Positions 3,782 through 64,000 of a stretch of 64,000 nt of DNA are shown here, piece by piece; position 1 is the stretch's first letter; every line of letters starts with the position of its first letter. The stretch is from sequence record OV032902.1. One strand, 5' to 3'. Under the pieces are notes generated by a model. It ran no database searches, had not been told where the DNA came from, and was given only the letters and a program-made list of their open reading frames with translations. A program made the position numbers and the translations under genes.

Positions 3782-3782
3782 A

Positions 3783-5301: not shown

Positions 5302-5303
5302 TT

Positions 5304-6878: not shown

Positions 6879-6933
6879 ACCCCAATGGGTGTTTACTAAG
6901 CATCCATGAGAATTTATTTAAAGAGAGTAACTT

Positions 6934-47433: not shown

Positions 47434-47471
47434 CCCTCCTGGCCGAAAGGCTGGGAGGGCTTTCTCTTTTT
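47434..47471 (+). terminator. GAAA-loop terminator
   Basis: CCCTCCTGGCC-GAAA-GGCTGGGAGGG followed by CTTTCTCTTTTT. Confidence 0.8.
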
Positions 47472-47482
47472 ATTCGCTCGTT

Positions 47483-47493
47483 AAATCCTGTAG
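47483..47493 (+). promoter_or_regulatory. Candidate late-promoter motif
   Basis: AAATCCTGTAG. Confidence 0.4.
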
Positions 47494-47518: not shown

Positions 47519-49180
47519 ATGTTTGATCAATACATAATCCGTTTGCAGAAAGAAGACAAAGGTTTAAAACCATTACCTTATGTCGTCTGGGCGGATGCTG
47601 CATCGATTCCTAGGCCTGAATCAATCAAGCCTTTCGATAGCAGTGTGAATTACAGTGTTAACTCTGTCATCTCAGATGGCGAGGGAAGACTACTTGTTGC
47701 CAAGCGACAACCTGAGTTAGGTTACTCTCGTGACAAAGTAGAGACAGCAGCAAATCTAAATTCTGATTATGATTCAGAATGTAAGCTAGTAGAGTATAAC
47801 GGGAAAACATATCTTGTTACTGCTCAAGCTGGTCAATCACAAAAGATATCTGCTTTAACCGGTGCCACTGCTATAACGGGTAACAAACTCGTAATCCAAG
47901 AGTGGGACGCAACTACTGGAGCTCTATCGCCAGTAGGCGTTATTTTAAACGTACCTTTGGAAAACCTAGAGGTATTTGAAATTGAAGGCAACCTGTACAT
48001 TACAGGCGGCGTATCACAGGGTAACCTTTTAGGTAAGACCCGTATTTGGAAATTTGACGGTGTAACGCTAAGTGCATTTACAACGTTTGAGAAATTTAAC
48101 CACGTTCTTTATTACAAGTTAGGTACACGTCATTTCTTTGCCGGCTTTAACTATGATACTGATTCACTAAAACTGTATCAGTGGACTCCGTATGGTACAG
48201 AGCTAGTAACAGAAGTAACGGAACTAACTGGTACTCTGTTACCTAATGAAAGATTCGTAGACGTTAACTATCAGATCTTTAATGGCGTCCTTTATATGTT
48301 CGTTGTTAAGTATGATGTAGGTGGCGATAAGTCAACCATCTCTACGTATCGTTTTGATAACATCCGCAAGACTTTGGTATTCGTTCGATCATTCGATATC
48401 GACGACCAAATTCTTCACATCAGTCCTCAAGAGATAAACCGTGAGTTCTATCTTCACGTTGCTCTTAAGGATGACTTCCTTCATACTTACAAGTTGAATA
48501 CTCAAACTATCGAGCTAACGCTTGCAAGTAAACTGCCGAAGATATTTGACTATCAAGGGATAGATACAGACATCTCGGGATTAGTTCTAAACACATCATT
48601 CTTTTATGAGGATGATGAGTATTATCTAAACGTACCTGTCTTATTGCAAGATGGTGCTTTAGATGCACTGAGTGTAACTTGTCGATGGGACGCGACGTTA
48701 CAACAATACATACCATTCAAAGGCTACCCTACCTACGGTGCAACCGACTGGCAGGTACTAGAAACAGACAAAGGTATTTTCTCGGTTATCACTAACCATA
48801 GAGATACCGTCACGACTTCTGGTGAGTCAGCTATTATTGGATGGGATAATCTAACCAAGAAATTCACCGCTACCCTCTCTGAGGTTATTGGTGGTTCAGT
48901 ATGGAATAATGAGGATTGGGAAGAGTTGCAAACAGCAACCTGCCTGGTCGCGCCTTTCAACACTGTTAACAAATATCGACCAGACATGTATGTTCTCGAT
49001 ACCGATGACACGTTGCTAAGATTGCGAACACTCACCCCACAGCCAACGTTCTATGCAGATGACTGGGAAACAATTCATCCTAGACAGCGCATCTCAACGT
49101 TGTACTTCTACGCTAACTTCAATTCGATGTTAGGTAGTCCTCAAAATTCTACGGGCGTAGTTGTCCAAATTGAAAACTAA
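47519..49180 (+). CDS. Probable virion protein: EAR/EPTP-like beta-propeller flanked by CBM-like repeats
   Basis: Blade YIPFKGYPTYGATDWQVLETDKGIFSVITNH matches the EAR/EPTP pattern; N- and C-terminal segments resemble the N-terminus of the 49192 protein. Confidence 0.6.
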   Translation: MFDQYIIRLQKEDKGLKPLPYVVWADAASIPRPESIKPFDSSVNYSVNSVISDGEGRLLVAKRQPELGYSRDKVETAANLNSDYDSECKLVEYNGKTYLVTAQAGQSQKISALTGATAITGNKLVIQEWDATTGALSPVGVILNVPLENLEVFEIEGNLYITGGVSQGNLLGKTRIWKFDGVTLSAFTTFEKFNHVLYYKLGTRHFFAGFNYDTDSLKLYQWTPYGTELVTEVTELTGTLLPNERFVDVNYQIFNGVLYMFVVKYDVGGDKSTISTYRFDNIRKTLVFVRSFDIDDQILHISPQEINREFYLHVALKDDFLHTYKLNTQTIELTLASKLPKIFDYQGIDTDISGLVLNTSFFYEDDEYYLNVPVLLQDGALDALSVTCRWDATLQQYIPFKGYPTYGATDWQVLETDKGIFSVITNHRDTVTTSGESAIIGWDNLTKKFTATLSEVIGGSVWNNEDWEELQTATCLVAPFNTVNKYRPDMYVLDTDDTLLRLRTLTPQPTFYADDWETIHPRQRISTLYFYANFNSMLGSPQNSTGVVVQIEN

Positions 49181-49191: not shown

Positions 49192-52100
49192 ATGAGTCTT
49201 TTACCGACTATCATTCGCTTGTACCATCACCAGGGAACACAGGATATTACAAAGTGGGTACTATGGGCTGACCGAAATGCGGCAGACGTACCAAGTAAGA
49301 TTCCAACGTTCCTTGAAACATACTACTACCGTAAAGGTACATATGTAGTTCATAACGATCGCATCTTCCGTGCAAACAAGATCATTATGAAAGGTACATT
49401 CGATGCCGACGAGTGGACCGAAATCGATCAGATGACTGGTTTCGTTGCCCGCTACCGTAGCGACATTGATTACGAACAAGACTACTACATTCTTGATTCT
49501 GACAGTAAGCTACTCCGTAACCGTTATGCTTTCTCTGCGAAAGTATACGATGAAAATGATTGGGAAGCTGTAGTAACAGGCTCGGAAGCTGAGACTGCTA
49601 CTGTTTACCTGGATCAACTAGATAGTATCGAAGAGTTCGAAGTAGAAGATGGTATCTTCATTGAACTTGGCGGTATTCCAGATGCGTACGACCCGTTCGC
49701 TGATTTGGAGCCTATCGAAAAATACTTCACAGAAGAACGTGAAGGTAACTACTACTCTTTCTCTAAAGAGCTAAAGGTCTTTACTGACTTAGTCGCAGGT
49801 AACCCTGCAAGCCATGGTGATAAAGTAGCCCGTGTTAACCCTGTGTTTGGTAACATGGTACTTTTCCAAGAAGACGAAGATAATCGTCCGACTTACTACG
49901 AAACAGAAGACGGAATCGGTTACCTTGTCTTTACTGGCAACGAACATCTACTAGGTGACTTAGGTACGACTACAATCGATAACCTAAACATTACTCTAGG
50001 TGTTCCTGGTACTGGTCATTTGAATCTGGTTGAGCATGAAGTGACAGACGGCATTGTTCGTTTCGGTCCTACGTTCCCGGATTCAACTAAGACTTGGTAT
50101 CTGAGTGAAGGTTTCTTACCTGAAGAAGAACTATCTACGTCTGAGCGTATTGCTGTAGATGAAGAAGTACTTCAACGTTCTATTGCGTCTTACCCTAGTG
50201 CGACAGTTCAATCTATGTCGAACTGGTTCCTGAATGATGTTAACTTCAATGAAGACATCTCAGGTTGGGACATGTCAGGTAAGTTCTTTACAGACGGCAT
50301 GTTTAAGAACGCTACTCAGTTCAACCAGCACATCGGTGCATGGGACATGGAAAACGTAGAGAATACGGCTTCTATGTTTGAGGGTGCGAGCAGCTTTAAC
50401 TTCCCTCTACATGAGTGGGACTTTGCTCAGCTGAAAGTTACCCGTGCAATGTTTAAAGATGCAATTGCTTTCAACCAAGATCTTTCTCTATGGGAAATGT
50501 TCAACGTTGTTGATGCATCTGCTATGTTCCAAGGTGCCGTAGCCTTTAATGGCTTCCTAGGTCTATGGAACATGCCTAACTTGCTTGACGCGTCTTACAT
50601 GCTTGACGGCGCAATTGCATTCGACCAAGACGTAAGTCAGTTCCGTTTATCGGAAGTAACTAACCTAGTCGGTATGTTCCGTAATGCGACGGTATTCAAT
50701 CGTCCTATTACTCAGTGGAGCACAACTAAGGTTACTGACATCTCGTTCATGTTCGAAGGTGCAGAAGCATTCAATCAAGACCTGGATACTTTTGTTACGT
50801 CTCAAGTAACTGGCATGATTGGCGTATTCGACGGAGCGACTGCGTTTAATGGTGACATCACTGGATGGGACACTATTAACGTAAACAGCATGATGCGTAT
50901 GTTCCGCAATGCAGTTGCGTTTAACCAAGACATCAATCCATGGTTGACAGACAATGTTAACAACATGGAAGAAATGTTTAGTGGTGCTGCGGCATTTACT
51001 TACGACATTTCTGATTGGTGTGTGCGTAACATTCTAGCAGAGCCGATTGGCTTTGATGCGGATACAAATGCTGCATGGGAAAACCAAACAGCATTGCAAC
51101 CAAAGTGGGGCACACCGTGTCTTCGTTACCTAGCTCGTTCTTACTATGACGCAAGTCGTATCGATACTCTATTCCAAGATGCTGCGGGTACAATCCCTGT
51201 ACAGAATCCTGGTGATAAAGTATTGCGCTGGAATGACCTTTCGGTTAACAACAATGCAGCTATCGGTGTTTTAGCTACAGCACCTACGTATCGTGAAGAT
51301 GCTAACGGTCGCGGCTATGTTGAATTCAACACTGATGAGTTTCTGTCATTTACTGATGCTGGTATTTCTTACGATACATGGCAAACAGTACCTGGCGTTG
51401 GTTTCTTCCAACTAAGTAACACTAATACTGTTATTGGTCCGAATGACACCACAGGCTCTCAGAAGCGCTACATCGGTCAGTTTGTCGCACTTGAGTCAAA
51501 CTACTCAGCTATTGATGAAACAGTCGTAGTAGAGTTTGTGCGCGAAGAACAGGGACTATACGACCCTAACACTGTGACTAACCTTTCTTACTACTTCCAA
51601 AACATGTTGGACTTTAACTCTGACATCGCTGAGTGGGAAATGGGCGGAATCACAAACGTTGAAGGTATGTTCCAGAATGCGTCTATCTTTGATGCCGGCA
51701 TCGGTGTTTGGGATATGGGCAATGTTGAGAACTTCTCGTATATGTTTGACGGTGCAGTTGCCTTCAATCAAGACATTGGTGCGTGGAATACTGCTAATGC
51801 TACTAACATGTCATACATGTTTGATGGCGCGTCTACGTTTAACCAAACTCTTGCATGGGATACATCTGGTGTTACTGACTTTGATGGTATGTTCCGTGGT
51901 GCAGTTAACTATCGTTCAGTTACTAACTTCGACTTAACTTCTGCTCTAAGCATTAACGGTATGTTCGAAGGTGCTATTAACTTTAACCAACCTTTCACGG
52001 GTCCAGCTCCAGTTCTTATGGAAGCAAGCTCTGTGTTCCAAGGTGCGACTAAGTTCAATAGTTCAGTAGATAGTCTTATTGCTGAAAACGTTTGGGATAT

Positions 52101-55100
52101 CTCGAATATCTTTAAAGACGCAGCAGCGTTTAACCAAGACCTAAGTTCTTGGGTTACGTCTGACGTAACAACAATGGAAGGTTCGTTTGATGGGGCGACA
52201 GTATTCGATCAAGACTTAGTCTGGGATACAAGCTCTGTAGAAACACTACAAAACACTTTCCGTAATGCACGTAACTTTAATAGTGACATCTCTGGATGGG
52301 TAACTACTAATGTTACAAACATGAGTCAAACCTTTGCCGGTGCATCTGCATTCAACACAGACATTCAGTCGTGGGATGTACGCAACGTAACAACATTCGA
52401 ATACACATTCGTTAACGCAGGTTCATTCAACCAGCCTCTTAACTTATGGCGCACAGAGAATGCTGTAACATTCAAAGGTATGTTCCAAGGTGCACAAACG
52501 TTCAACCAAGTTCTAAGTAACTGGGATACGGACACGGTACTTGACTTTGACTTCATGTTCTTCAATGCCTCTGCCTTCAATAACGATATCTCTACATGGT
52601 GTGTTAAGCAGATTCCTGTAGCTGGCCCAGAAGACTTCTCTTTTGGTTCTCCGCTTATTGCTGACAATACTCCTATCTGGGGTGCACGCTGTTTGAGTGA
52701 TCTAGCAGACCTATGGTACGACTCGTCAGACATCACGAAAGTGTTTACTGACTTGGCTAAGACCACACAGCCATCTCCTGGCGACAAGGTTGCTGTATTA
52801 GAAGACAAAGGTAAGTTGGGCCTAGATGCTATCCAGTCGGATGTAACTAAGCAGCCTATCTATCGTGAAGATGCTAATGGTCTAGGTTACCTAGAATTCC
52901 CTGTTGGTTCTTCATTGACGGCTACTGGTGTTATCGGTACTGGTGTTTGGGTTAACAACATTCCATCGGTAGGTGGTTACGGTGATTACATCGTCGTTCC
53001 TGCATCTACATTTACACTGGACTTTGATTCAGTAAATGTTCCAGCAGCTTCTCGTAAACTAGGTCAAGCTATCGTATACTACGCAGCTCCTAACGAAAGT
53101 GATTTGCTGGTACTGAACAAAGCTGTACGTCGTTGGTCTGACTTATATGCACCTGGTGCTGTAACAGATATTTCGGCGGCTATTGAAGGTCGTGCTGATT
53201 TCGACTGGGATATTTCTACTTGGACTATGGGTCTTGTTGAAAAGGCTAATTACCTATTGGCAGGCTGTGAACAGTTTGATGTGGATATTTCAGATTGGGA
53301 TACTTCTTCTTTACAAGAAGCAGAGGGTATGTTCCTAGACTGTAAGATCTTTAACCAAGACCTTACTTGGGATGTACAGAACCTAGCAAACGCTAAAGCA
53401 ATGTTCCGTGGCTGTACGGAGTTTAATGGTGCTATTGGTGGTTGGGTTACTACAGCTCTTGCTGACTTGACGCAGACTTTCTACGCAGCTCGTGCATTCG
53501 ACCAAGACATTTCTGGTTGGGATACACAAAACGTTTTATCTTTCCAAGAGACGTTCTCTACGACTCGTGACTTTAACCAAGACCTAAGTGCTTGGAATAC
53601 AAGTGCGGCTACCACAATGAGTGGTATGTTCTTGGGTGCAGAATCGTTTAACTCTCCTGTGGCGACATGGGACACGTCAAGCGTTACAGACTTCTCTGGT
53701 ATGTTCCAGGCTGCTGCTGCATTCGACCAAGTTGTAGACCACTTCGATACATCCAGTGCAACAACTCTGGCTCGTATGTTCCGTGATGCAGTTACGTTTA
53801 ACCGTAGCATGATGTCTTGGGATGTTCGTCAAGTAGTTGACTTCTCTGAGATGTTCTATGGTGCGGATGAATTCCAAGGTCAAATCTCTTCTTGGGTATT
53901 TGACGCTAGCGATATTCTGATGGACCGTATGTTCCGCGATGCATACAAGTTTAATGATGACATCGGTGTTTGGGAAACAAACAACGTAACGTCTATGCTT
54001 GAGATGTTCCGCGATGCATTCGTGTTTGGTCGTAACCTTATCACGTGGTGTGTTAAAGACGTTCTTCCTTCTGAAGCTACAAACTTCGGAACTAACAGCC
54101 AACTTCAAGCTGCACAGATTCCTCTATTTGGTGAGCCATGTATTGGTGAGCTATTGGATGGTTACTACGATGCGGCTATCAAACGTACAGTTGCTACAAA
54201 CATTGACGGTACAGGTGAACCACTTGACGGCGATAAAGTAGCGTATCTAGGTGACTTGTCTCCTAATGACAATCACGCTGTACAGGCAGACCCTGCCCTA
54301 CGTCCAACTTATCGTGAAGACGTTAATGGTCGTGGTTACCTTGTATTCGAAGATGATCAACATCTTTTAGTTCCTGCTATTACTGGTGCCTCTCGCAACT
54401 GGGTAGCTGTTTGTGGTCGTGGTACTCCAGAGTGGACTGGCCAAACAAACAACCCTGCGAAAATTGGTATTAAGTATGCCGGTGGTGCAAACAAGGTATG
54501 GTACTTTGGCGCAGAAGCAATTACTGCAACGGCACGTACTGCTGCTGAAGAACTATTGATTCGCAATGCAATGCAAATCCGTGCACTGAACTATCCTTCT
54601 GACTTACAGTCTGAAATGGATTGGTTCTTCCATAACGAACAATACCTAAGTGGCGGCCTAGCTGACCTTAATACGGTTGGTCTATCTACACTGGAAGGTA
54701 CGTTCAAAGGATGTCAACGCTACAATGAAGATATCACTGGTTGGGATACATCGGCTATCGCGTCGTTTGCTCAAACCTTTGAAGGCTGTGCTACTCTTAA
54801 CCAAGACTTCTCTACTTGGACCGTAGCTCAAGGCTTAAGCTTCTCTGGTATGTTTAACGGTTGTACTTCTTTATCGTTCGATGCTTCTGGCTGGGACGTA
54901 AGTCGTGCTTCTAACTTCAGTAACATGTTCCGCAGCTGTGTGGCTTTCAATGCCGATATCTCAGGCTGGACAATTCGTACTGATGTTGACATTAACTTCT
55001 TTGGTATGTTTGCTGGTGCAACTATCTTTAACCAAGATATCACTGGCTGGAATATGGACCGTGTTGTAAACACAGGTGAAATGTTCTACGGTGCTCAAGC

Positions 55101-58100
55101 CTTCAACCAAGACCTAAGTCAATGGGATGTTGAAAGTATCACAAATATGGAATCTATGTTCCGTGGTGCAATTGCATTCAATCAAGACATTGGTGATTGG
55201 CGTGTTGGTAACGTATTGAACATGGACCAAATGTTCAACGGTGCAACGGTATTTGATCAAGACATCTCTCGTTGGTGTGTAAGCCAAATTCCAACAACTC
55301 CAACTAACTTCGATACTGCTTCGGGTTTCTTGGGTGATCTGGCTAAGCAACCTATCTGGGGTGGCTACTGTCTTATTGAGCGTTCGGAGTTCTTCCACTC
55401 TGCACGTGATAAAGATTACATGTTCCAAGACTCAGCAGGTACTGTGCCTGTTACAGCTCCTGGACAACCTGTAGGTTACGTTACCGACTTGACTGGTAAC
55501 TTCCGTCCATTGCTACAGACAAATAATGCTAAGCGTCCAGTATATCGTGAAGACGATAATGGAAACGGATACATTGAGTTTGGTCCAAACCAAACGTTAG
55601 TCCTAGACTACAATGGCCGTGCTGACCATATTCTATCTGTTGCTGACCGTGGTAAGATTCTATTTGCTGACGAAGACTTCTTCGGTGGTAATGACATTAA
55701 GTCTTACTTGTCTGCTGAAACGAAAGGTGTTCAGCGTATGGGCGACATGGTAGGTATTCGTACCGACCTTGCTACAGCAGATAAAACATCAGCAAACGCT
55801 ACTATGCAACAACGTGGTTTAGTTTACCATGAATCTGCACAGCCTAGTATGCGTCAGTTCTTTGCTGATAACTTGAACGTCAATAGTGCCGATATCGGTG
55901 CATGGGATATGAGCAACGTAGTTGACGTATCTGAGATGTTCTTGAACTGTGCTTCATTCAATCAAGACCTAACAGGTTGGAATGTTTCACAGGTAACAAA
56001 CTTTAGCGCACTATTCTCTGGTGCGGGTACATTTAACCAAGCGATTAATGGTTGGAACACAGCTAACGCAACTAACATGTCATTGATGTTTAAAGGTGCT
56101 TCATCTTACAATCAATCACTTGTAGGTCTTGACACTTCTTCTGTAACTACAGTAGCAAGCATGTTCCAAGACGCAGTAGCTTACAACCAAACAATCAATG
56201 GACTAGATTTAAGTAACTGTACGGACTTCTCTCGTATGTTCCAAAACGCAGTTATCTTTAACGCGTCCGTTACTAACATTGATACTTCATCTGCAACAAC
56301 TGTGGAATCTATGTTCCAAGATGCTAACCTGTTTAACAACGGTGGCTCTGCGATGAATGCAATGGACTTTGGTAACTGTACAAACTTTAGCGGCATGTTC
56401 ATGAACGCTGTGAACTTCAATCAACAAGTTTCGACTTGGGTATTGTACACAGGTGGTTCTGCTATTAACATGACTGCAATGTTTAAAGCGGCACGTAAGT
56501 TTAACCGTGACATCACTAGCTGGGACACAACGCGTGTTACTAACTACACAGAGATGTTTATGAATGCTAACGTATTCAACAACGGTGGCGTTGCTATGAC
56601 AGAAGCGGCAGGTAACTTCAATGTTGCAAATGCTGTTACTCTGGAAGGTATGTTCGAAAACGCACGTCTATTCAATGTAGATATCAGCGACTGGACTACT
56701 GGCAATGTAACAAACATGTCTCGCTTGTTCCGTAGTGATACGGGCGTATCTGTATTTAACCAACCTATTGGCGGTTGGAATGCGTCATCTGTGACGACTA
56801 TGTCTGAGATGTTCCGTGCGGCTACAGCGTTTAACCAAAACGTTGGTACGTGGAATGTTAATAACGTAACAGACATGTCGGAAATGTTTATGTCGGCAAC
56901 GGCGTACAATAACGCAGGTGTACAAAACCTTGAGAGTTGGAATGTTAATAATGTTACTACTATGGAAGGCATGTTTGAGTTCGCTTCAAGCTTTAACTCA
57001 TTCCTATGTCGCTGGAACGTAGAAAACGTTGTTAATATGGAACGCATGTTCAATGATGCTGACGCAATGACTGCTTACATCGCAGGTTGGGACGTTGCAC
57101 ATATTGCTACCGAGCCTACTGACTTCGGTGGTGACAACATTGAAAACCCTCCAGTTTGGGGTGGTGTTGCAGAACCATGTCGTTCAGACTGTACTCGTGG
57201 TCTTGTTGATGAAGGTGCAGAAAACGTTTACTTGGCGTTTGAAGCTCAATGGCTATTCCAAGATGCAGGTGGTACTATCCCTGTAACTGCCGATGGTCAG
57301 AAAATCCTTCTTATTGAAGATAGCTCTGGTAATGGTCGCCACATTACGTTTGATGCGGCTGAAGCTCCTACGTACCGTTTAGATGGTGCTGATGGTTACT
57401 TCGAATTCCCTGCTGGTACTCATGTTGAGTTTACTGGCCTGCCAGGCAACTCTAAAGTTATCTTTGATTTAATTGGTATCGGTGCTACTTACGTTCGTCG
57501 TAGTAACAACGGTAACTTATTCGACAATGCTCGTACAGGTACATACCTAGTGTCTTCTATTGTTGTTGCTCCAGTGACTGCCGATGAGGTAGCTGTAATT
57601 GGCGCATTGAATAGTTGTACTCCTGGTTACTCTGTAGCTACAACAACTCTTGAATATCTATTCGCAACAGAACCTGTTATCGGTGACGTGACTGGCTGGA
57701 ATACTTTGTCAGTTACAAACATGCATAACACGTTTGCGTTCTGTCCGACGTTCAACCAAGACATTTCATCATGGGCTACCTCTAACGTTACTACGATGCA
57801 AGGTATGTTCAGCATGGCCGTTAGCTTCAACCAAGACATTTCTGGTTGGGCAGTAAACAATGTGGAAAACTTCCGCTATATGTTTAACGGTGCTGCTGCA
57901 TTTAACTGTGGTGAACCAGCGGGTCAAAGTACGACTCCGATGTCATGGACAACGAACTCTGTTACAAACATGTCTGGCATGTTTGAGAACGCAACTTCGT
58001 TTAACCAACCGATTGGTACATGGTTAGTAACATCGAACACTGACTACTCTTACATGTTTAAGGGTGCCTCGGCATTCAATCAAAACATCAATACATGGAT

Positions 58101-61100
58101 TCCATCTAACAGCGCAACGCTAGAGTCTATGTTTGAGGGAGCAGCTTCGTTTAACAATCCAGTTAATAACTGGGCAGTTAACAACGTAACTAACTACCGT
58201 AACATGTTCAAAGATGCAGTATCATTCGACCAAGACCTAAGTGGCTGGACTGTAACAGCAGGCCAAACATTCGAAGGTATGTTCGATGGTGCAATCGCAT
58301 TTAACCAAGACTTAAGTACTTGGAACACAGTGGGTGCAACCACTATGGCGGCAATGTTCCGTGGAGCTACAAGCTTTAACGGCGATATTTCTACATTCCG
58401 CATGGAAAACGTCAATGATGTTTCTGAGATGTTCAGTAACGCGACAGCCTTCAATGGCACCATCAACGGATGGAATATGTCAAGTGTAACTGACTTCGCA
58501 TTGATGTTTAATAATGCCGACTCATTCGACCAACCGTTAAGCGGCTGGGTTACATCTTCGGGTGTAAGTATGTTTGGCATGTTTGCAAATACGGCTATCT
58601 TTAATCAAGACATTTCTGGTTGGGACGTTTCTAACGTAACAAACTTTGCTGAGATGTTTAAAGGTGCTTTGGCATTTAATCAGAAACTAAGCTGTTGGAA
58701 CACTGTTGATGCAGTAACAATGGATTCTATGTTCCAAGATGCAATTTCATTCGACCAGAACATTTCCGGTTGGTGTGTGTCTGTGATTAATACCAAACCT
58801 ACAGACTTTGATACGAATGGTAATGCTGGCTTTACTGGTAATGCACTAAAACAACCTGTTTGGGGTACGTGTGTTCCTGGTGGCTTCTCTGCTGATTCTC
58901 TTGTTGGTGTTTACTCGCCAATCGACAAGAACAATCTATGGCAAGACGCTGGTAAAACTATTCCTGTAACAACATCGGGTCAAACCGTAGCAGTAATCGA
59001 AGATGGTGTGGGTACAGGCGATGATGCAATCGTTACTGGTACAATCACTTACATGGAAGATACAAACGGTCTAGGTTACTTTAACTTCTCGTCAGGTGCA
59101 GACATTACTATTGCTAGTATCACTCAAGCAGTAGATGTAGCATTTGTTATCCCTGGCGTAGGTAATACGTACACCACTCGTGCAGCTAATGCTGGCGGTC
59201 TAACTTGGTGGGGTAAAGGCGCTGATCATATTGTCGGTCCTATTATCGTAACCGAGCAAGGTGATGGTGGAACAGTACGTGGGTTTGATTGTTCGGTTTA
59301 TCCTTCAGGTACTACTGAAACTCTGGCTTGTCTATTTAAAGATGAAACATTGTTTAACCAGAACATCAATGATTGGGATGTATCGGGCATTAAGAACTTC
59401 CTAGAAGTTTTCGAAAATGCGACTACGTTCAATCAACCACTAGATCAATGGGATACGTCTTCAGCCCTTACAATGATGAGTATGTTCTACGGAGCATCTG
59501 TCTTTAACCAAGACATCTCAAACTTTGTATTGGATAACGTAACTTCTATCTTTGGTATGTTCCGTGATGCAATCGCGTTTAACCAGAATATCAATAGCTG
59601 GAATACTTCAGCTGTCACTAACATGGGTCATGTGTTTAACAACGCAGTAGCCTTTAATGGTGCACTTGATAACTGGGACATGCGTGCAGTAACAAGCACG
59701 ACTTTCATGTTCCGTGGTGCTAACTCGTTCACACAGGACCTAAACGGCTGGACATTTACAGTTCTGGAAAACACCAGTTCTATGTTCTTGTTTAACACAA
59801 TCTTTAACCAACCAATTGATAATTGGAACGTTTCGACTGTGACAAACATGACTGCAATGTTCCGTGGTGCGACGGCATTCAACCAAGACTTAAGTTCTTG
59901 GGTTGTTAATGCAGTAGATACATTCGAGAGTACTTTCCGTGCTGCTACATCCTTCAATGGTGACATCAGTACTTGGACTCCGATTAACGCTACTGTGTTT
60001 AGTCGTATGTTTGATGACACCGGTGCTTTCGATGGCGATATCTCTGGATGGGATGTTTCTTCGGGCATTGAGTTTGAATACATGTTCCGCGATTCACAGG
60101 CTTTCAACCAAGCTATCGGTAAATGGGATTTAGCTTCGGCTACTAACCTAGAAGGTATGTTCCAAGGTGCAGCGGTATTTAATCAGGAAATCAAGTGTTG
60201 GAATACAGGCACTGTCACTAACATGGACAACATGTTTGAAGACGCTGTTGTGTTTGACCGTAACATTTCTTCATGGGATGTTAACTTGATTGGTTCGATT
60301 CCGACTAACTTTGCTACTAACTCTCCGAACGATGGTCTGACTAGTAAACTTCCTTCATGGGGTACAACTGGTACAGGTGGTCTGACTGGTACGAACATTC
60401 TAGCGATTACGGATATTGCTGGTGCAAATGGTCTATGGCAAGACGCTGGTAAAACAATTCCTGCTGCGGCAGATGGTGACCCAGTAGCCGCTATTGATGA
60501 TTTGTCTGGTAATGGTGCAGACTTAATTGCATTCTCTGCTACTCTGCATTTCGACACAAACGGCAATGGTTACATTACACTTGCTTCAGGTGGTTTCGTT
60601 CGTGCGACCGACATCTTTGTTGCATGTGACATGGCCTTTAATGTTCCTGGCGTTGGTAATACTTCTGTGCCTCGCATAGCAAATGCATCTGGTGCTTTGT
60701 TCTGGAATAAAGCATTTGAGCTTAACTTTACTGATTTTGCTATTACCGAATCTGGTTATGGTAACACAGTAGAAGCAAACACATGTCGCGATTACGTAAA
60801 TGGTACAGTGACTACCCTTGCAGGTATGTTCGACAATGAAACATTGTTTAACAGTGACCTGTCTCACTGGAATACCACTGGCGTAACTAACATGTCAGCT
60901 ATGTTCTTTAATGCTCCAATCTTTAACCAACCGCTTGATAGCTTTGACATGTCTTCGGTAACGAATACATCATCAATGTTCTATGCAGCGCAAGCTTTCA
61001 ACCAAGACCTAACAAGTTGGGATGTAAGCAAGGTAGAGAATGGTGCGTTTATGTTTGACACTGCTTCATCGTTTAACGGTGATATCAGTACATGGGAAAT

Positions 61101-64000
61101 GCCAGAAGCTACGGCTCTTAATGGTATGTTCCGTTACGCAGTAGTGTTTAACCAAGACATTAGTTCACTTAACCCTGTTAAGAACTTGAACTTTAGTGAA
61201 ATGTTCCGTCGAGCTGAGAAGTTCAATAACGGTGACGCAGCAGATAATAACACTAAACCACTTGGATGGACAACTGACGCAGCTACGAATATGCATCGCA
61301 TGTTTAAAGACTGTTTTGAGTTTAACCAAGATGTTAGTGGATTTACTTTAGATGCTGTAACAGACACTGAAGAGATGTTCGAAGATAACTGGATCTTCAA
61401 CCAAGACATAACATCTTGGAATGTTGGTGCGGTTACTACGTTCGAATCTATGTTCGAAGATGCTCGTCTATTTAACAACGGTGCGGATAAAGGTTTCGTT
61501 GGTCCGGCAATGGAATGGGATATTAGCTCTGCGACAACTCTTTACGAGATGTTTAAAGATGCTGACTCGTTCAACTGTCCTATGCCTAACTGGGCATTCC
61601 CTAACGGAGCAACAGCATACAACTTGTTAGATGACTGTCGTGACTTCAACCAGGACATTAGTTCATGGACGTTTGGTACTTGTGATATCGGCTACATGCT
61701 TTCTAGCTGTCATTCATTTAACAATGGTGGCGCAGCAGGTACGTCAGCAGTTCCACTAAGTTGGGATACAACTAATGTTACAAACATGGTCGGCTTGTTT
61801 AACAACTGTCGTGCATTCAACCAAAGCTTGCCTAACATGGCATTCGATGGTGTAACATCTATTGCGGATCTATTCTCAGGCTGTGAAGTCTTTAACCAAG
61901 ATCTGAATCATTGGGATGTTTCAATGATCGAAGATATGTCGTACATGTTCTCATATGCGTACGCATTCAACTCTCCGATCGACCAATGGGATACTTCAAG
62001 CGTTACAGACATGTCTAGCATGTTCGAAGACGCAACAGCATTTAACCAGCCAATCGGTTCTTGGAATGTTGGAGCAGTAGAATACTTCCCTAGCATGTTC
62101 GCATACTGTAGTGCGTTCAATCAGCCACTTAACTGTTGGAATACTGTCAATGCGACAGATATGGATTGGATGTTCGAAGACTGTTCTGCGTTCAACCAAA
62201 ACCTAAGTGGTTGGTGTGTGACAAACTTCCCATCGGCTCCAAGCGGTTTCGATAGTGGTGCCTCGGCATACACAGAACCTCGCCCTATCTGGGGCACATG
62301 TCCACGTGGTAATCTGCAAAGTCCTAACATGCTTGCAGCATATGACGCACGTGAGATTACGTCTTTATGGCAAGACGCAGGTCGTACGGCACAAGTAACA
62401 GCACCAGGTCAAACAGTTGCAGCAATAGATAGTGTTCGCACATCTACCTACACTGATCACCTTATTGTTAATGGTACAGCAACGTACCGTGAAGATGCTA
62501 ATGGCCTAGGTTACATCGAAGTAGATAACAATACAACTCTTGAACTTATCGGTCATACTGGTAACGTAGTTGTTTCTTACACTATCCCTATGGTTGGTGA
62601 AGTAAATGTTATTTCGACTTCTACAGCAGCTCAGACAGACTTCTGGGGCAAAGACGCATCATTTATCTTCGGACAGATGATTGTGGCACCAGCAGCTGAT
62701 GCGGCCTTTATTGGCGGCCTTGAGTGTAGTAGCTACAGCGGTATCACTAATGTTTCATTGGCACGTCACTTTGAAGGCGTACTTTCTAACAACTCTCCAG
62801 TTGTTGAATGGAGCACTGCAACAGTAACAGACATGTCATACCTGTTTGCTGGAGATACTTCGTTTGATGGCGATGTAACCAACTGGAATACTTCTAACGT
62901 AACAAACTTCGCTGGAATGTTCCAAGGATGTAGTAGCTTTAATCAGGATATCTCTTCATGGGATGTTACAAGCGCTACTGACATGACCTCTATGTTTGAA
63001 GATGCGTCTGCATTTAACATTAACGTCTCTACGTGGACCATGGGTACACTAGTAACGTCTATGTCTAAGATGTTTAAGAACGCTTCTACCTTCGACCACT
63101 CTCTGACAGGTTTCGTTACAAACTCTGTAACTGACTTCTCTGAGATGTTCATGGGCGCGAGCTCATTCAATGGTCTAGTTAATAGCTGGAACACAGGTTC
63201 TGCTTTAACTATGGAAGGTATGTTTGATGGCGCTAATGCGTTTAATCAATCAGTTGACACATGGGTAACAAACAGCGTGACAAACATGTCTCGTATGTTT
63301 AAAGAAGCATATGCTTATAACCGTAGTATGAATACACTGAACGTACAAAGTGTAACTACGATGGCTCAGATGTTTATGGACGCGTGGGGCTTTAATAGCG
63401 ATATTACAAGCTGGAATACCACTGCCTTGACCGACACATCTGAGATGTTCAGAGGTACGACTGTCTTCAACCAAGCGATTGGTGGATGGAACATGTCTAG
63501 CGTAACGACCATCAATTCGATGTTCCGTGATGCACAGGCATTTAATCAGCCACTAAATACTTGGAATGTTTCTGCGTGTACTGACTTTGGTACTTCTTTC
63601 GCAGCAGCAACAGCATACGATCAGCCAATGAACAACTGGATTGTTACTGCGGGTACGAACTTTAACTTTATGTTCGCAGGTGCAACTCTGTTTGACCAAG
63701 ATATCACAGGTTGGAATGTGGCAGCAGCAACTACCGTAGAAGGTATGTTCTGGGGAGCAGAAGCTTTCAACCAAGCAATTGGTTCTTGGTCTCTACCACT
63801 TGTTACTTCACTACAAGACTTCTTGCGTGACGCTCGTGCGTTTAACCAGGCTCTTGATGCGTGGGATGTATCAGGTATCACCACCATGGAAAACATGTTC
63901 TATGGTGCAGTAGCGTTTAACCAGCCTCTAGCGGCTTGGGATGTTTCAAACGTAACTAACTTTGCTCAGATGTTCCGTGATGCTTCTGTGTTTAATCAAG
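49192..64000 (+). CDS. Giant (at least 4936 aa, 3'-truncated) DUF285/BspA-like 26-residue-repeat protein with nine spacer domains
   Basis: GGAG RBS and ATG at 49192 (MSLLPTIIRLY..). Frame 1 reads as FNQDISGWDVSNVT.M..MF repeats in the segments translated, up to the last bases (FAQMFRDASVFNQ). The track lists no closed frame-1 ORF here, consistent with no in-frame stop. Confidence 0.88.
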   Translation, partial: MSLLPTIIRLYHHQGTQDITKWVLWADRNAADVPSKIPTFLETYYYRKGTYVVHNDRIFRANKIIMKGTFDADEWTEIDQMTGFVARYRSDIDYEQDYYILDSDSKLLRNRYAFSAKVYDENDWEAVVTGSEAETATVYLDQLDSIEEFEVEDGIFIELGGIPDAYDPFADLEPIEKYFTEEREGNYYSFSKELKVFTDLVAGNPASHGDKVARVNPVFGNMVLFQEDEDNRPTYYETEDGIGYLVFTGNEHLLGDLGTTTIDNLNITLGVPGTGHLNLVEHEVTDGIVRFGPTFPDSTKTWYLSEGFLPEEELSTSERIAVDEEVLQRSIASYPSATVQSMSNWFLNDVNFNEDISGWDMSGKFFTDGMFKNATQFNQHIGAWDMENVENTASMFEGASSFNFPLHEWDFAQLKVTRAMFKDAIAFNQDLSLWEMFNVVDASAMFQGAVAFNGFLGLWNMPNLLDASYMLDGAIAFDQDVSQFRLSEVTNLVGMFRNATVFNRPITQWSTTKVTDISFMFEGAEAFNQDLDTFVTSQVTGMIGVFDGATAFNGDITGWDTINVNSMMRMFRNAVAFNQDINPWLTDNVNNMEEMFSGAAAFTYDISDWCVRNILAEPIGFDADTNAAWENQTALQPKWGTPCLRYLARSYYDASRIDTLFQDAAGTIPVQNPGDKVLRWNDLSVNNNAAIGVLATAPTYREDANGRGYVEFNTDEFLSFTDAGISYDTWQTVPGVGFFQLSNTNTVIGPNDTTGSQKRYIGQFVALESNYSAIDETVVVEFVREEQGLYDPNTVTNLSYYFQNMLDFNSDIAEWEMGGITNVEGMFQNASIFDAGIGVWDMGNVENFSYMFDGAVAFNQDIGAWNTANATNMSYMFDGASTFNQTLAWDTSGVTDFDGMFRGAVNYRSVTNFDLTSALSINGMFEGAINFNQPFTGPAPVLMEASSVFQGATKFNSSVDSLIAENVWDISNIFKDAAAFNQDLSSWVTSDVTTMEGSFDGATVFDQDLVWDTSSVETLQNTFRNARNFNSDISGWVTTNVTNMSQTFAGASAFNTDIQSWDVRNVTTFEYTFVNAGSFNQPLNLWRTENAVTFKGMFQGAQTFNQVLSNWDTDTVLDFDFMFFNASAFNNDISTWCVKQIPVAGPEDFSFGSPLIADNTPIWGARCLSDLADLWYDSSDITKVFTDLAKTTQPSPGDKVAVLEDKGKLGLDAIQSDVTKQPIYREDANGLGYLEFPVGSSLTATGVIGTGVWVNNIPSVGGYGDYIVVPASTFTLDFDSVNVPAASRKLGQAIVYYAAPNESDLLVLNKAVRRWSDLYAPGAVTDISAAIEGRADFDWDISTWTMGLVEKANYLLAGCEQFDVDISDWDTSSLQEAEGMFLDCKIFNQDLTWDVQNLANAKAMFRGCTEFNGAIGGWVTTALADLTQTFYAARAFDQDISGWDTQNVLSFQETFSTTRDFNQDLSAWNTSAATTMSGMFLGAESFNSPVATWDTSSVTDFSGMFQAAAAFDQVVDHFDTSSATTLARMFRDAVTFNRSMMSWDVRQVVDFSEMFYGADEFQGQISSWVFDASDILMDRMFRDAYKFNDDIGVWETNNVTSMLEMFRDAFVFGRNLITWCVKDVLPSEATNFGTNSQLQAAQIPLFGEPCIGELLDGYYDAAIKRTVATNIDGTGEPLDGDKVAYLGDLSPNDNHAVQADPALRPTYREDVNGRGYLVFEDDQHLLVPAITGASRNWVAVCGRGTPEWTGQTNNPAKIGIKYAGGANKVWYFGAEAITATARTAAEELLIRNAMQIRALNYPSDLQSEMDWFFHNEQYLSGGLADLNTVGLSTLEGTFKGCQRYNEDITGWDTSAIASFAQTFEGCATLNQDFSTWTVAQGLSFSGMFNGCTSLSFDASGWDVSRASNFSNMFRSCVAFNADISGWTIRTDVDINFFGMFAGATIFNQDITGWNMDRVVNTGEMFYGAQAFNQDLSQWDVESITNMESMFRGAIAFNQDIGDWRVGNVLNMDQMFNGATVFDQDISRWCVSQIPTTPTNFDTASGFLGDLAKQPIWGGYCLIERSEFFHSARDKDYMFQDSAGTVPVTAPGQPVGYVTDLTGNFRPLLQTNNAKRPVYREDDNGNGYIEFGPNQTLVLDYNGRADHILSVADRGKILFADEDFFGGNDIKSYLSAETKGVQRMGDMVGIRTDLATADKTSANATMQQRGLVYHESAQPSMRQFFADNLNVNSADIGAWDMSNVVDVSEMFLNCASFNQDLTGWNVSQVTNFSALFSGAGTFNQAINGWNTANATNMSLMFKGASSYNQSLVGLDTSSVTTVASMFQDAVAYNQTINGLDLSNCTDFSRMFQNAVIFNASVTNIDTSSATTVESMFQDANLFNNGGSAMNAMDFGNCTNFSGMFMNAVNFNQQVSTWVLYTGGSAINMTAMFKAARKFNRDITSWDTTRVTNYTEMFMNANVFNNGGVAMTEAAGNFNVANAVTLEGMFENARLFNVDISDWTTGNVTNMSRLFRSDTGVSVFNQPIGGWNASSVTTMSEMFRAATAFNQNVGTWNVNNVTDMSEMFMSATAYNNAGVQNLESWNVNNVTTMEGMFEFASSFNSFLCRWNVENVVNMERMFNDADAMTAYIAGWDVAHIATEPTDFGGDNIENPPVWGGVAEPCRSDCTRGLVDEGAENVYLAFEAQWLFQDAGGTIPVTADGQKILLIEDSSGNGRHITFDAAEAPTYRLDGADGYFEFPAGTHVEFTGLPGNSKVIFDLIGIGATYVRRSNNGNLFDNARTGTYLVSSIVVAPVTADEVAVIGALNSCTPGYSVATTTLEYLFATEPVIGDVTGWNTLSVTNMHNTFAFCPTFNQDISSWATSNVTTMQGMFSMAVSFNQDISGWAVNNVENFRYMFNGAAAFNCGEPAGQSTTPMSWTTNSVTNMSGMFENATSFNQPIGTWLVTSNTDYSYMFKGASAFNQNINTWIPSNSATLESMFEGAASFNNPVNNWAVNNVTNYRNMFKDAVSFDQDLSGWTVTAGQTFEGMFDGAIAFNQDLSTWNTVGATTMAAMFRGATSFNGDISTFRMENVNDVSEMFSNATAFNGTINGWNMSSVTDFALMFNNADSFDQPLSGWVTSSGVSMFGMFANTAIFNQDISGWDVSNVTNFAEMFKGALAFNQKLSCWNTVDAVTMDSMFQDAISFDQNISGWCVSVINTKPTDFDTNGNAGFTGNALKQPVWGTCVPGGFSADSLVGVYSPIDKNNLWQDAGKTIPVTTSGQTVAVIEDGVGTGDDAIVTGTITYMEDTNGLGYFNFSSGADITIASITQAVDVAFVIPGVGNTYTTRAANAGGLTWWGKGADHIVGPIIVTEQGDGGTVRGFDCSVYPSGTTETLACLFKDETLFNQNINDWDVSGIKNFLEVFENATTFNQPLDQWDTSSALTMMSMFYGASVFNQDISNFVLDNVTSIFGMFRDAIAFNQNINSWNTSAVTNMGHVFNNAVAFNGALDNWDMRAVTSTTFMFRGANSFTQDLNGWTFTVLENTSSMFLFNTIFNQPIDNWNVSTVTNMTAMFRGATAFNQDLSSWVVNAVDTFESTFRAATSFNGDISTWTPINATVFSRMFDDTGAFDGDISGWDVSSGIEFEYMFRDSQAFNQAIGKWDLASATNLEGMFQGAAVFNQEIKCWNTGTVTNMDNMFEDAVVFDRNISSWDVNLIGSIPTNFATNSPNDGLTSKLPSWGTTGTGGLTGTNILAITDIAGANGLWQDAGKTIPAAADGDPVAAIDDLSGNGADLIAFSATLHFDTNGNGYITLASGGFVRATDIFVACDMAFNVPGVGNTSVPRIANASGALFWNKAFELNFTDFAITESGYGNTVEANTCRDYVNGTVTTLAGMFDNETLFNSDLSHWNTTGVTNMSAMFFNAPIFNQPLDSFDMSSVTNTSSMFYAAQAFNQDLTSWDVSKVENGAFMFDTASSFNGDISTWEMPEATALNGMFRYAVVFNQDISSLNPVKNLNFSEMFRRAEKFNNGDAADNNTKPLGWTTDAATNMHRMFKDCFEFNQDVSGFTLDAVTDTEEMFEDNWIFNQDITSWNVGAVTTFESMFEDARLFNNGADKGFVGPAMEWDISSATTLYEMFKDADSFNCPMPNWAFPNGATAYNLLDDCRDFNQDISSWTFGTCDIGYMLSSCHSFNNGGAAGTSAVPLSWDTTNVTNMVGLFNNCRAFNQSLPNMAFDGVTSIADLFSGCEVFNQDLNHWDVSMIEDMSYMFSYAYAFNSPIDQWDTSSVTDMSSMFEDATAFNQPIGSWNVGAVEYFPSMFAYCSAFNQPLNCWNTVNATDMDWMFEDCSAFNQNLSGWCVTNFPSAPSGFDSGASAYTEPRPIWGTCPRGNLQSPNMLAAYDAREITSLWQDAGRTAQVTAPGQTVAAIDSVRTSTYTDHLIVNGTATYREDANGLGYIEVDNNTTLELIGHTGNVVVSYTIPMVGEVNVISTSTAAQTDFWGKDASFIFGQMIVAPAADAAFIGGLECSSYSGITNVSLARHFEGVLSNNSPVVEWSTATVTDMSYLFAGDTSFDGDVTNWNTSNVTNFAGMFQGCSSFNQDISSWDVTSATDMTSMFEDASAFNINVSTWTMGTLVTSMSKMFKNASTFDHSLTGFVTNSVTDFSEMFMGASSFNGLVNSWNTGSALTMEGMFDGANAFNQSVDTWVTNSVTNMSRMFKEAYAYNRSMNTLNVQSVTTMAQMFMDAWGFNSDITSWNTTALTDTSEMFRGTTVFNQAIGGWNMSSVTTINSMFRDAQAFNQPLNTWNVSACTDFGTSFAAATAYDQPMNNWIVTAGTNFNFMFAGATLFDQDITGWNVAAATTVEGMFWGAEAFNQAIGSWSLPLVTSLQDFLRDARAFNQALDAWDVSGITTMENMFYGAVAFNQPLAAWDVSNVTNFAQMFRDASVFNQ

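Follow-up and report, generated by a model that had tools for sequence, protein, structure and literature searches.

What is encoded by a reading frame that opens near the 3′ end of a phage record and is still open at its last base? The window analysed here, a stretch of 64,000 nucleotides, is the 3′ end of the Vibrio phage vB_VpaM_sm033 record (OV032902.1; sm033 in the following), and an earlier note on it had proposed that a giant DUF285/BspA-like gene starts at ATG 49192, runs off the end and was missed by the list of open reading frames (ORFs). The frame is real: from ATG 49192 to base 64000 it contains no stop in 4,936 codons. It is already open from 49174, and the ATG, preceded by a GGAG-type ribosome-binding site, lies 11 nt past the stop of the upstream gene. 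Its absence from ORF lists is mechanical, because the frame runs off the end of the source. The continuation, expected in a next window, is instead found at the beginning of the same record. The terminal 127 nt of OV032902.1 are its initial 127 nt, an exact and unique match in frame with the coding sequence SM033_00001 (13..7539), and this overlap represents the ends of one circular contig. The complete gene resumes at record bases 1-7539 and comprises 22,221 nt, encoding a very acidic protein (pI about 4.1) of 7,406 aa and ~807 kDa; SM033_00001 carries DUF285 repeats along its whole length. Because the gene spans the record ends, it is unannotated in GenBank, where the sole coding sequence inside its window part is the 210-nt antisense SM033_00309, most likely a spurious one. 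Antisense ORFs of 100-170 aa are numerous within the giant gene, and opposite-strand ORFs are a predicted feature of palindromic coding sequences in the paper on PARCEL repeats (Roske et al. 2010, PMC2996958).

Could two separate genes have supplied the halves, or could the array have been collapsed or joined into a chimera at the contig ends? A gene that spans short-read contig ends inside a repeat array invites this suspicion. Against it stand not only the exactness, uniqueness and frame of the overlap, but also the repeat content: no k-mer of 31 nt or more recurs in the 22-kb gene, whose longest DNA repeat is at most 24 nt, which makes assembly collapse unlikely. In addition, the halves of module 9 on either side of the junction are collinear with module 9 of the ortholog in phage vB_pir03 (pir03; residues 6-581, then 583-657), and the 320,253-bp contig emerged as a single contig from the Illumina-only as well as the hybrid long-read assemblies of a mock-virome study, the sole mention of sm033 that we found in the literature. 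We consider an assembly artefact extremely improbable.

To which family does the protein belong? All analyses of it were run on its two pieces separately, the window part and the record-start part. Each of five ~1,000-aa pieces of the window part matches Pfam DUF285 (PF03382) with E values of 5e-145 to 1e-219 and 475-716 bits per piece against a cut-off of 25, and PF03382 is the only family at E <= 0.01 in every piece, with no match to other LRR-family HMMs such as LRR_5. TIGR02167, ‘PARCEL repeat-containing surface protein’, is also matched above its cut-off of 30 (56 and 87 bits), so that the HMM search suggested in the earlier note came out positive for both families. The profile of the Mbov_0838 family PARCEL lipoprotein (NF045896) scored 333 and 425 bits, on the repeats only and below its cut-off of 500 bits. 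With a self-built unit HMM we counted 107-121 DUF285 units in the window part (i-Evalue 1e-3 to 1), in line with the 110-120 estimated previously, and 158-182 in the whole protein. The repeat motif read from the sequence also holds: in 102 ungapped in-register units, the conserved positions are F1 (100%), N2 (90%), Q3 (67%), [IL]5 (82%), W8 (84%), M19 (82%), F20 (94%) and A23 (86%).

The protein shares with the PARCEL family (PF03382/TIGR02167; PMC2996958) the 25-residue tandem repeat and the identical conserved hydrophobic positions, but it is viral rather than cellular, lacks a lipoprotein or signal sequence and places its arrays in a larger module that also contains a beta-sandwich domain and a Cys cap. 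Lipoprotein or signal-directed membrane targeting is found in many PARCEL members, though not in all. That a signal peptide is missing had been stated before, and a hydropathy scan agrees, detecting no signal- or TM-like segment at the N-terminus (maximum 0.22 over the first 40 windows of the scan). The dyad symmetry of the repeat DNA, to which the ‘palindromic’ of PARCEL refers, does not clearly exceed the level that the protein sequence dictates: the mirror-complement score of the repeat DNA profile is 0.350, compared with 0.315 ± 0.011 for column shuffles (maximum 0.354), and inverted 7-mers are no more numerous than in controls with shuffled synonymous codons (134 vs 146 ± 16; 56 vs 74 ± 11). 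Typical DUF285/PARCEL members have a few to tens of units, as against ~170 in the sm033 protein.

These units do not form the single solenoid of more than 4,900 aa that had been envisaged. Instead, at intervals of 400-670 aa a second repeated domain, ~190 aa long and termed domain X here, breaks the array. The 7,406 aa are laid out as an N-terminal module (~180 aa) followed by 13 modules, each consisting of a beta-sandwich domain X, a helix, an LRR-like DUF285 solenoid of about 8-20 coils and a Cys cap (Table 1). The fold of the unit is predicted with high confidence by AlphaFold2 (54139-55386; pLDDT 90.1, pTM 0.85), while the model of domain X alone is poor (pLDDT 59.8). Domain X gave nothing significant against Pfam (best E 0.024, in one of 12 copies) or, by sequence, against the PDB (best E 0.24), and comparison of its model with PDB folds returned weak matches to cupin or CBM-like beta-sandwiches (E >= 0.05). 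An assignment as a LamG-like jelly roll was dropped, its sole support being one BFVD match of that name. For the DUF285 block, a sequence search of the PDB found zero matches, and a fold search with the unit model found none at E <= 0.001, the best being an LRR protein at E 0.44; 67 predicted structures in the viral library match at E <= 0.001.

Table 1. Features of the giant-gene locus, in window coordinates
Feature	Position	Strand	Remarks
315-aa ORF with the same CBM5/12-like module, just upstream of the annotated tail fibre gene	24671..25618	+	i-Evalue 1e-7
Intrinsic terminator behind the helicase gene	47434..47459	+	11-bp stem with 8 G-C pairs, then T-run
Promoter-like motif GTTAAATYYTRT	47480..47491	+	about 28 nt upstream of the 553-aa gene
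553-aa gene SM033_00308	47519..49180	+	first gene of the operon-like pair with the giant gene
Giant gene, window part (codons 1-4,936)	49192..64000	+	open frame; junction checked against pir03 module 9
N-terminal tail-fibre-type module (aa 1-180)	49192..49731	+	conserved leader, then two CBM5/12-like repeats
Domain X copy 1 (beta-sandwich), right after the N-terminal module	49729..50235	+	HMM i-Evalue 8e-11
Block 1 cap and domain X copy 2	51028..51603	+	i-Evalue 1e-63
Cap and domain X copy 3	52615..53196	+	i-Evalue 7e-55
Cap and domain X copy 4	54061..54642	+	i-Evalue 9e-60
Cap and domain X copy 5	55285..55875	+	i-Evalue 9e-61
Cap and domain X copy 6	57100..57675	+	i-Evalue 3e-55
Cap and domain X copy 7	58783..59349	+	i-Evalue 1e-70
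Cap and domain X copy 8	60289..60843	+	i-Evalue 2e-60
Cap and domain X copy 9; module 9 spans the record junction	62224..62775	+	i-Evalue 5e-65
SM033_00309	62943..63152	-	antisense ORF inside the giant gene
127-nt stretch identical to record bases 1-127	63874..64000	+	in frame with SM033_00001

Where would such a protein act? One clue is its N-terminal module, presumed to be the virion-proximal end. A profile of five N-termini matches chain 9rkv_M in the PDB, gp015 of Agrobacterium phage 7-7-1, at E 3e-8 over residues 74-136, a span of only about 63 residues that corresponds to a short repeat motif, and 8fqc_P1, gp124 of phage Milano, at E 0.06. The matched region of gp015 is the baseplate-anchoring part of a long tail fibre (PMC12796354), and that of gp124 is likewise described as baseplate- or tail-binding. 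The word ‘anchor’ may be too specific, since the CBM5/12-like repeat also occurs in tandem along fibre shafts. Beyond the homologous N-terminal CBM5/12-like region, the long tail fibre gp015 (9RKV) and the tail spike gp124 (8FQC) differ from the sm033 protein, with 587 aa, a beta-helix, a jelly-roll tip and no DUF285 repeats. A representative library holds 120 relatives of the N-terminal module; among ten of them sampled, seven fall into PHROG tail-fibre families and eight carry Pfam CBM_5_12. By these profile comparisons, the N-terminus of the giant protein is homologous to tail-fibre proteins. Searches with the longer N-terminal stretch of 352 aa yielded no Pfam family at E <= 0.01 and zero relatives in a scan of viral contigs, and a word-indexed protein search for giants with the same N-terminus returned pir03 alone. 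Within sm033, the N-terminal module is common to SM033_00002, SM033_00003 and SM033_00088, the first two being DUF285 genes directly downstream of the giant gene, and partial copies are found in two neighbours.

One of the proteins with partial copies is SM033_00308, whose N-terminus had been thought to be shared with the giant protein. A short CBM5/12-like repeat is indeed common to both, but it is strongest at the C-terminus of SM033_00308 (7.7e-11), and the N-terminal similarity is marginal. For the description of this protein as virion-like we found no support; it has a weak match to EPTP/EAR beta-propellers (Pfam EPTP E 5e-5), and its pir03 ortholog was labelled ‘EAR-like’. Together with the giant gene it forms an operon-like pair. 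A terminator, at which a new transcription unit begins, and a short shared motif precede the pair. This motif, GTTAAATYYTRT, recurs right after a terminator at 40791, before a 557-aa gene, and at record position 7590, before SM033_00002, and thus accompanies three fibre-like gene units. It is only loosely conserved in pir03, and its frequency in the window, counted with up to one mismatch, does not exceed chance (5 found, 3.97 expected); we do not take it as evidence of late expression, the type given to the motif in the earlier note. The surroundings are of a different kind: helicase, DprA-like and deoxyribonucleotidase genes lie upstream of the giant gene, and endonuclease and DHFR genes lie downstream. 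The annotated tail fibre gene and another module-bearing ORF are located 17-24 kb upstream.

Is the array functional at all? The pir03 ortholog, ORF 200 (QNI21147.1, 6,417 aa), has been reported as a ‘putative PARCEL’ of unknown function, with the remark that PARCEL was ‘not described in phages’ and with no architecture or function given (Misol et al. 2020, PMC7765460). The layout recurs, with boundaries at the same residues, in orthologs from vB_pir03 and C-ZP2022 and in one metagenomic protein (P0002). pir03 has the same gene order as sm033, with the helicase, the EAR-like protein (~550 aa) and the giant gene, and the N-terminal 352 aa of the two giant proteins are 43% identical. Modules 1-9 are orthologous one to one (39-58% identity, compared with 29-40% between paralogous modules), whereas the C-terminal modules lack clear one-to-one partners, pir03 having 11 modules and sm033 13. 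In sm033 the gene is split over the record ends and unannotated, and two extra DUF285 genes follow it directly. Along most of the gene, the replaced three-module cassette described below excepted, dN/dS is 0.05-0.14; the layout of the giant gene is conserved and under purifying selection. According to published descriptions, PARCEL repeats move, spread horizontally and tend to expand within genes, and the difference in module number, 13 vs 11, would suit a selfish expansion or a ‘reservoir of sequence variants’ that has no function and is open by chance or through recent expansion. Against this reading stand the one-to-one orthology and the low dN/dS values seen here. The ORF, 19-22 kb long, is uninterrupted in sm033, pir03 and P0002, and one apparent frameshift is annotated in the copy of C-ZP2022. 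DNA repeats in the gene are at most 24 nt long, and therefore the module duplications are old; the GC content of the gene is that of the genome. The selfish reading is already largely refuted by this sequence evidence, and we regard it as very improbable.

Comparison of the closer relatives pir03 and C-ZP2022 revealed where the gene does vary. Their modules 7-9 are just 37-41% identical, while module 6 stands at 68% and the other modules at 82-95% (modules 1-5 at 86-95%): a three-module cassette has been replaced between close relatives. A conserved proximal part combined with a mosaic variable part amounts to a mosaicism like that of receptor-binding proteins. We rejected the idea that the cassette tracks the host species, as sm033 carries the pir03 type even though its recorded host matches that of C-ZP2022.

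With modest confidence, we propose that the giant protein is a virion-attached fibre or adhesin of the jumbo myovirus sm033. The earlier note had suggested a phage appendage, which receives homology support from the match of the N-terminal profile to the anchoring region of the long tail fibre of 7-7-1 and to CBM5/12 fibre proteins; the presence in the virion, the attachment site, the oligomeric state, the binding of ligands and the extended length are inferred. In this model, the N-terminal 180 residues, leader and two CBM5/12-like repeats, would dock the protein on the virion, with the periphery of the baseplate or tail as the most likely site. As this module also stands at the head of at least three smaller DUF285 paralogs, one type of docking site could be used by several proteins. 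The thirteen modules would trail from it like beads on a string, each solenoid presenting, on its concave face or its side, a variable surface to ligands of the host envelope or of particles in the host habitat, and binding to these might raise the chance of encounter ahead of irreversible adsorption. Assuming ~170 coils at ~0.48 nm, the usual rise of a beta-solenoid, and 13 domains of 3-4 nm, the extended chain would be about 100-150 nm long. Several points count against a fibre, among them these: the immediate neighbours are DNA-metabolism genes and not tail genes, the variable cassette does not track the host species, and LRR-like solenoids are normally monomeric, whereas fibre anchors are trimeric.

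But do other phages place such proteins on their virions? Among 50,697 phage records, 106 contain DUF285 solenoid blocks at 30-40% identity, and most of these genomes are large. Blocks like those of sm033 are found in the jumbo phages OBP (gp145), Kc263, Aeromonas phages D3 and LAh10, and N1M2, and further in PAU (gp103), pEt-SU and the Lak phages. The other jumbo-phage proteins are shorter than that of sm033; OBP gp145, with 1,713 aa, lacks both domain X and the N-terminal module of sm033. The DUF285 genes of OBP and Kc263 adjoin baseplate genes. This speaks for the tail and against a docking at the capsid or neck, as a head fibre, whisker or collar filament that would sense the environment or act as an adhesin at first contact. 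Jumbo and flagellotropic myoviruses do have long fibres on capsid or collar (capsid fibres of 7-7-1, collar filaments of Goslar), and in the window the giant gene is far from recognisable baseplate genes; yet the named relatives of the N-terminal module are all tail-fibre or tail-spike proteins, and a capsid or neck appendage appears rather improbable to us.

The same OBP protein bears on a different possibility, namely that the giant protein is not a virion component but acts in the infected cell, as a scaffold, decoy or binder of host factors, or coats debris and particles when released at lysis. gp145 is labelled ‘hypothetical’, next to a ‘putative virion structural protein’, which may mean that it was absent from the published virion mass spectrometry. 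The replication and nucleotide-metabolism genes around the giant gene would suit an intracellular product, its presence in the virion is purely inferred, and the numerous DUF285 proteins of algal giant viruses have no assigned virion role. In our literature search, we found no phage virion proteome listing a DUF285 or BspA protein and no virion proteome or image for sm033, pir03 or C-ZP2022. Conversely, the N-terminal module is of the tail-fibre type, neither a signal peptide nor a TM segment that could serve export turned up in the hydropathy scan, 807 kDa would be very costly for a non-structural product, and the cassette mosaicism resembles that of receptor-binding proteins. On balance we see a non-virion role as unlikely, if worth keeping in mind.

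Our preferred reading, a virion-attached fibre or adhesin, finds a parallel in the ‘fiber cloud’ of phage Goslar (Chimalliviridae). The DUF7941 proteins of this cloud were found in virions, and a site at the periphery of the baseplate and a role in host recognition are proposed for them (bioRxiv 10.64898/2026.04.21.720040). In both cases a family of paralogs shares one N-terminal module, followed in Goslar by CBM, hydrolase or LRR/beta-helix domains. The N-terminal modules appear to differ, that of sm033 having no Pfam match in a Pfam copy that possibly lacks DUF7941, and the Goslar proteins are proposed to polymerize head to tail, whereas sm033 would reach its length inside one polypeptide. 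A bolder proposal, which we offer as doubtful, is that the protein represents a new class of appendage: a single-polypeptide chain of ~100-150 nm with 13 LRR-like binding modules, each specialised in its own way, that would form, together with the smaller paralogs, a multivalent ‘adhesin cloud’. Unlike a receptor-binding fibre with a single tip, the cloud would keep the phage attached to Vibrio envelopes and to chitinous or mucous particles, by analogy with the Ig-like capsid decorations thought to hold phages in mucus. It would fit the CBM5/12-like head piece, the weak GH18-like character of a neighbour and the association of vibrios with chitin.

The pir03 ortholog was already described in 2020 (PMC7765460); the extent and architecture of the sm033 gene are worked out here. 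A 22-kb gene that makes up ~7% of a 320-kb phage genome has been absent from public annotation since the record was cut inside it, and the ‘first gene’ of the record is in truth the final third of the giant gene. Pipelines that handle circular contigs as linear will repeat this error. With 7,406 aa, the product exceeds the published ortholog of 6,417 aa, and to our knowledge no larger protein has been found in a cultured phage.

Were the protein not in virions, the finding would be a curiosity of genome annotation. The giant protein offers a tractable case for DUF285, a fold for which our PDB searches gave no solved structure and no ligand is known to us. A PARCEL ORF of unknown function has become a testable hypothesis: a protein whose head piece is of the tail-fibre type and is followed by 13 conserved beta-sandwich/DUF285/cap modules, with a cassette of three modules that can be swapped.

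The sequence comes from Vibrio phage vB_VpaM_sm033 (sm033; OV032902.1, a linear record of 320,253 bp), to which window positions 40000-50500 are 100% identical; the window starts at record base 256,254, and its base 64000 closes the record. The record's taxonomy line reads Caudoviricetes and the name points to a V. parahaemolyticus myovirus; GC content in the window is 43%. An earlier note had described a giant DUF285 gene, missed by the ORF track, that runs past the window end. The frame from ATG 49192 is indeed open to base 64000 (4,936 codons, no stop encountered), and it was missed because ORFs running off a source go unlisted. The gene does continue, but it resumes at the start of the record rather than in a next window. 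Window bases 63874-64000 repeat record bases 1-127 without a mismatch; a terminal duplicate of this kind (127 bases) usually marks a circular contig that was output together with its k-mer overlap. A codon of the giant frame begins at 63874 and hence also at record base 1; frame 1 is open from there to a stop at 7537-7539 and takes in the CDS SM033_00001 (13..7539), which is DUF285 along its whole length. Since the overlap is in frame, the giant gene comprises 14,682 + 7,539 = 22,221 nt, encoding 7,406 aa (~807 kDa, pI ~4.1, 93 Cys). Its window and record-start parts were analysed separately, not as a joined sequence. The first CDS of the record, SM033_00001 (2,508 aa), was called from an ATG inside the giant and represents its C-terminal third. 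Given the duplicate at the record ends, the non-redundant sm033 genome measures 320,126 bp.

A gene read across the two ends of a linear record could be an assembly artefact, which we consider scarcely credible here, as the join is backed by three independent results. The giant gene contains no repeated 31-mers, its longest exact repeat being 24 nt. It is collinear with its ortholog in Vibrio phage vB_pir03 (pir03, ORF 200) across the join: module 9 aligns with residues 6-581 of pir03 module 9 before the record end and with residues 583-657 after the record start. Finally, the 320,253-bp contig was also obtained in hybrid PacBio and ONT assemblies.

The assignment to DUF285 is borne out by Pfam PF03382, matched by all five consecutive pieces (E 5e-145 to 1e-219). 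The pieces also pass the cut-off of NCBIfam TIGR02167, ‘PARCEL repeat-containing surface protein’. The initial estimate of 110-120 repeats agrees with the 107-121 units that a repeat-unit HMM made from the giant's own sequence finds in the window part (158-182 over the whole giant). Likewise, the positions of the proposed repeat motif are occupied as claimed in 33-100% of 102 in-register units, with a core of F1 (100%), N2 (90%), W8 (84%), M19 (82%), F20 (94%) and A23 (86%). GenBank annotates a single CDS in this stretch, the 210-nt antisense SM033_00309. Antisense ORFs of 100-170 aa are numerous inside the giant (several on the minus strand, 52365-61478); palindromic repeat coding sequences are predicted to have opposite-strand ORFs, a point discussed in the PARCEL paper (PMC2996958).

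About every 400-670 aa, the DUF285 array is broken by ~190-aa stretches, here termed domain X, which are mutually homologous (27-46% identity in full-length alignments) and match no sequence in Pfam or the PDB. A domain X HMM finds 13 full copies, the first at aa 180-348, directly after the N-terminal module. Profile positions 1-27 recur alone at the extreme C-termini of the giant and of its paralog SM033_00002, so this short Cys-containing segment caps each DUF285 block at its C-terminal end. The giant thus opens with an N-terminal module (aa 1-180), after which come 13 units, each with a domain X core, an array of DUF285 repeats and a cap. For unit 4 (416 aa), AlphaFold2 gives a confident model from a 13-sequence alignment (pLDDT 90.1, pTM 0.85), with a beta-sandwich (~residues 1-130), a helix (135-150), a solenoid and the cap. 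A PDB fold search with this model returned no significant match (best, an LRR protein at E 0.44). A viral library of predicted structures yielded 67 matches at E <= 0.001, every one a DUF285 or ‘BspA family’ protein from a phage or an algal giant virus.

Orthologs of the giant, within an identical gene order (helicase, ~550-aa protein, giant), are found in pir03 (19,254 nt, 6,417 aa) and in the related phage C-ZP2022, whose giant is annotated as two pieces, which implies one apparent frameshift; the helicase upstream of it is annotated in three. Together with a third relative (6,272 aa, from read-archive assemblies), they share a layout of 11 modules each, the first seven module boundaries falling at the same residues. 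Between sm033 and pir03, modules 1-9 pair off as one-to-one orthologs with 39-58% identity, compared with 29-40% between paralogous modules; hence the duplications are old and each module has been retained individually. The sm033 modules 10-13 have no clear pir03 partners. Over most of the gene, dN/dS between pir03 and C-ZP2022 is 0.05-0.14. Next to these values, a functionless repeat expansion seems very improbable. Between the same two phages, modules 7-9 are only 37-41% identical, module 6 is 68% and the others 82-95% identical, so that modules 7-9 constitute a replaced cassette of ~2,000 aa. Receptor-binding proteins typically show mosaicism of this sort. That the cassette tracks host species was rejected; the sm033 cassette is of the pir03 type.

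What, then, does the giant do? Its residues 1-330 share homology with the N-terminal regions of SM033_00002 (E 1e-20) and SM033_00003 (E 4e-12), and the N-terminal module is also present in SM033_00088; all three are DUF285 proteins. The N-terminus had also been described as shared with the upstream 553-aa protein: a short repeat is indeed alike, strongest at that protein's C-terminus, with nothing in common beyond it. A profile of five N-termini matches residues 74-136 of the phage 7-7-1 long tail fibre gp015 in the PDB (9rkv_M, E 3e-8) and the Milano tail spike gp124 (E 0.06), in regions belonging to parts that have been described to anchor the fibre to baseplate or tail (PMC12796354, PMC10811340). 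Among 1.84 billion representative proteins, the module has 120 relatives, many with 4-13 tandem motif copies; of ten sampled, seven match PHROG tail-fibre families and eight Pfam CBM_5_12. By these PDB, PHROG and Pfam matches, the head piece is a divergent tail-fibre repeat module of CBM5/12-like type. The main evidence pointing to a virion appendage is this homology, although over so short a region it is not proof. The appendage reading of the earlier note has thereby gained homology support and is plausible, if unproven; we lean slightly towards it. A head or neck fibre would also be an appendage; we think it quite unlikely.

The immediate neighbours of the 553-aa gene and the giant are DNA-metabolism genes, a setting in which a non-virion protein might also be found; weighed with the head-piece homology, this is unlikely, though not negligible. 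With an endolysin and a virion structural gene in its first third, the window carries structural and lysis genes as well as those for DNA metabolism. Blocks of DUF285 are present in 106 of the 50,697 phage records, chiefly those of jumbo phages. In OBP and Kc263, DUF285 genes adjoin baseplate genes; OBP gp145, labelled only ‘hypothetical’ beside a neighbour labelled ‘virion structural’, has neither domain X nor the head piece found in sm033. In Goslar, ten virion proteins with a common N-terminal module, some extending into CBM, GH or LRR domains, are proposed to make a baseplate ‘fiber cloud’ (2026 preprint, bioRxiv 10.64898/2026.04.21.720040). They would be a functional analog of the sm033 family.

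The giant begins 11 nt after the 553-aa gene and a further terminator lies beyond its stop; the two genes are probably co-transcribed, and the 553-aa protein could be an adaptor or assembly factor. A short motif, GTTAAATYYTRT, comes after the terminators that precede three fibre-like units. Its frequency in the window does not exceed chance, and it is only loosely conserved in pir03. A terminator of their own, together with this short motif, precedes the two downstream paralog genes; the 557-aa gene likewise follows a terminator and the GTTAAAT motif seen at the giant's operon. SM033_00002 (535 aa) looks like the head piece plus one module of the giant; SM033_00003 has 1,165 aa, and SM033_00088 (838 aa), elsewhere in the genome, likewise carries the N-terminal module, then domain X and DUF285 blocks. 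An annotated tail fibre gene lies ~17 kb upstream of the giant, and the 676-aa protein may be another fibre-like protein.

Features around the giant gene and its paralogs (window positions unless the record is named)
Feature	Position	Strand	Remarks
Virion structural protein	33-2069	+	PHROG 3004, E 5e-96
Endolysin	15350-16261	+	PHROG 181, E 3e-51
676-aa protein	19127-21157	+	Weak coiled-coil matches; weak YadA-anchor-like match (E 5e-4, below cut-off)
315-aa ORF	24671-25618	+	Same CBM5/12-like module as giant; just 5' of the 2,351-aa tail fibre gene
‘Tail fiber protein’ (annotated), 2,351 aa	25630-32685	+	PHROG 9851 match; Pfam CBM_5_12 repeats near C-terminus
Very large gene, 2,282 aa	33893-40741	+	No PHROG match; weak beta-propeller Pfam match (KIB1-4, E 1e-4)
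557-aa protein	40838-42511	+	Sub-threshold GH18 (chitinase-family) match, 28.7 bits vs cut-off 29.6
Strong terminator	47434-47459	+	After helicase gene
553-aa gene (SM033_00308)	47519-49180	+	Weak EPTP/EAR repeat match; partial fibre-module copies at both ends
SM033_00309	62943-63152	-	GenBank's only CDS inside giant; most likely spurious
SM033_00002 (smaller paralog)	OV032902.1 7646-9253		N-terminal module, then domain X + DUF285 blocks
SM033_00003 (smaller paralog)	OV032902.1 9265-12762		N-terminal module, then domain X + DUF285 blocks

The gene family itself had already been noticed in pir03, where ORF 200 was noted for being ‘a very large gene ... 19,254 bp’ and for a PARCEL domain ‘not described in phages up to date’; no function was given for it, and the upstream gene was named ‘EAR-like’ (Misol et al. 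2020, PMC7765460). The sm033 giant is a larger, unannotated addition to this family. New are the full extent of the gene, its module architecture, its fibre-type head piece, the family of paralogs and the replacement of the cassette.
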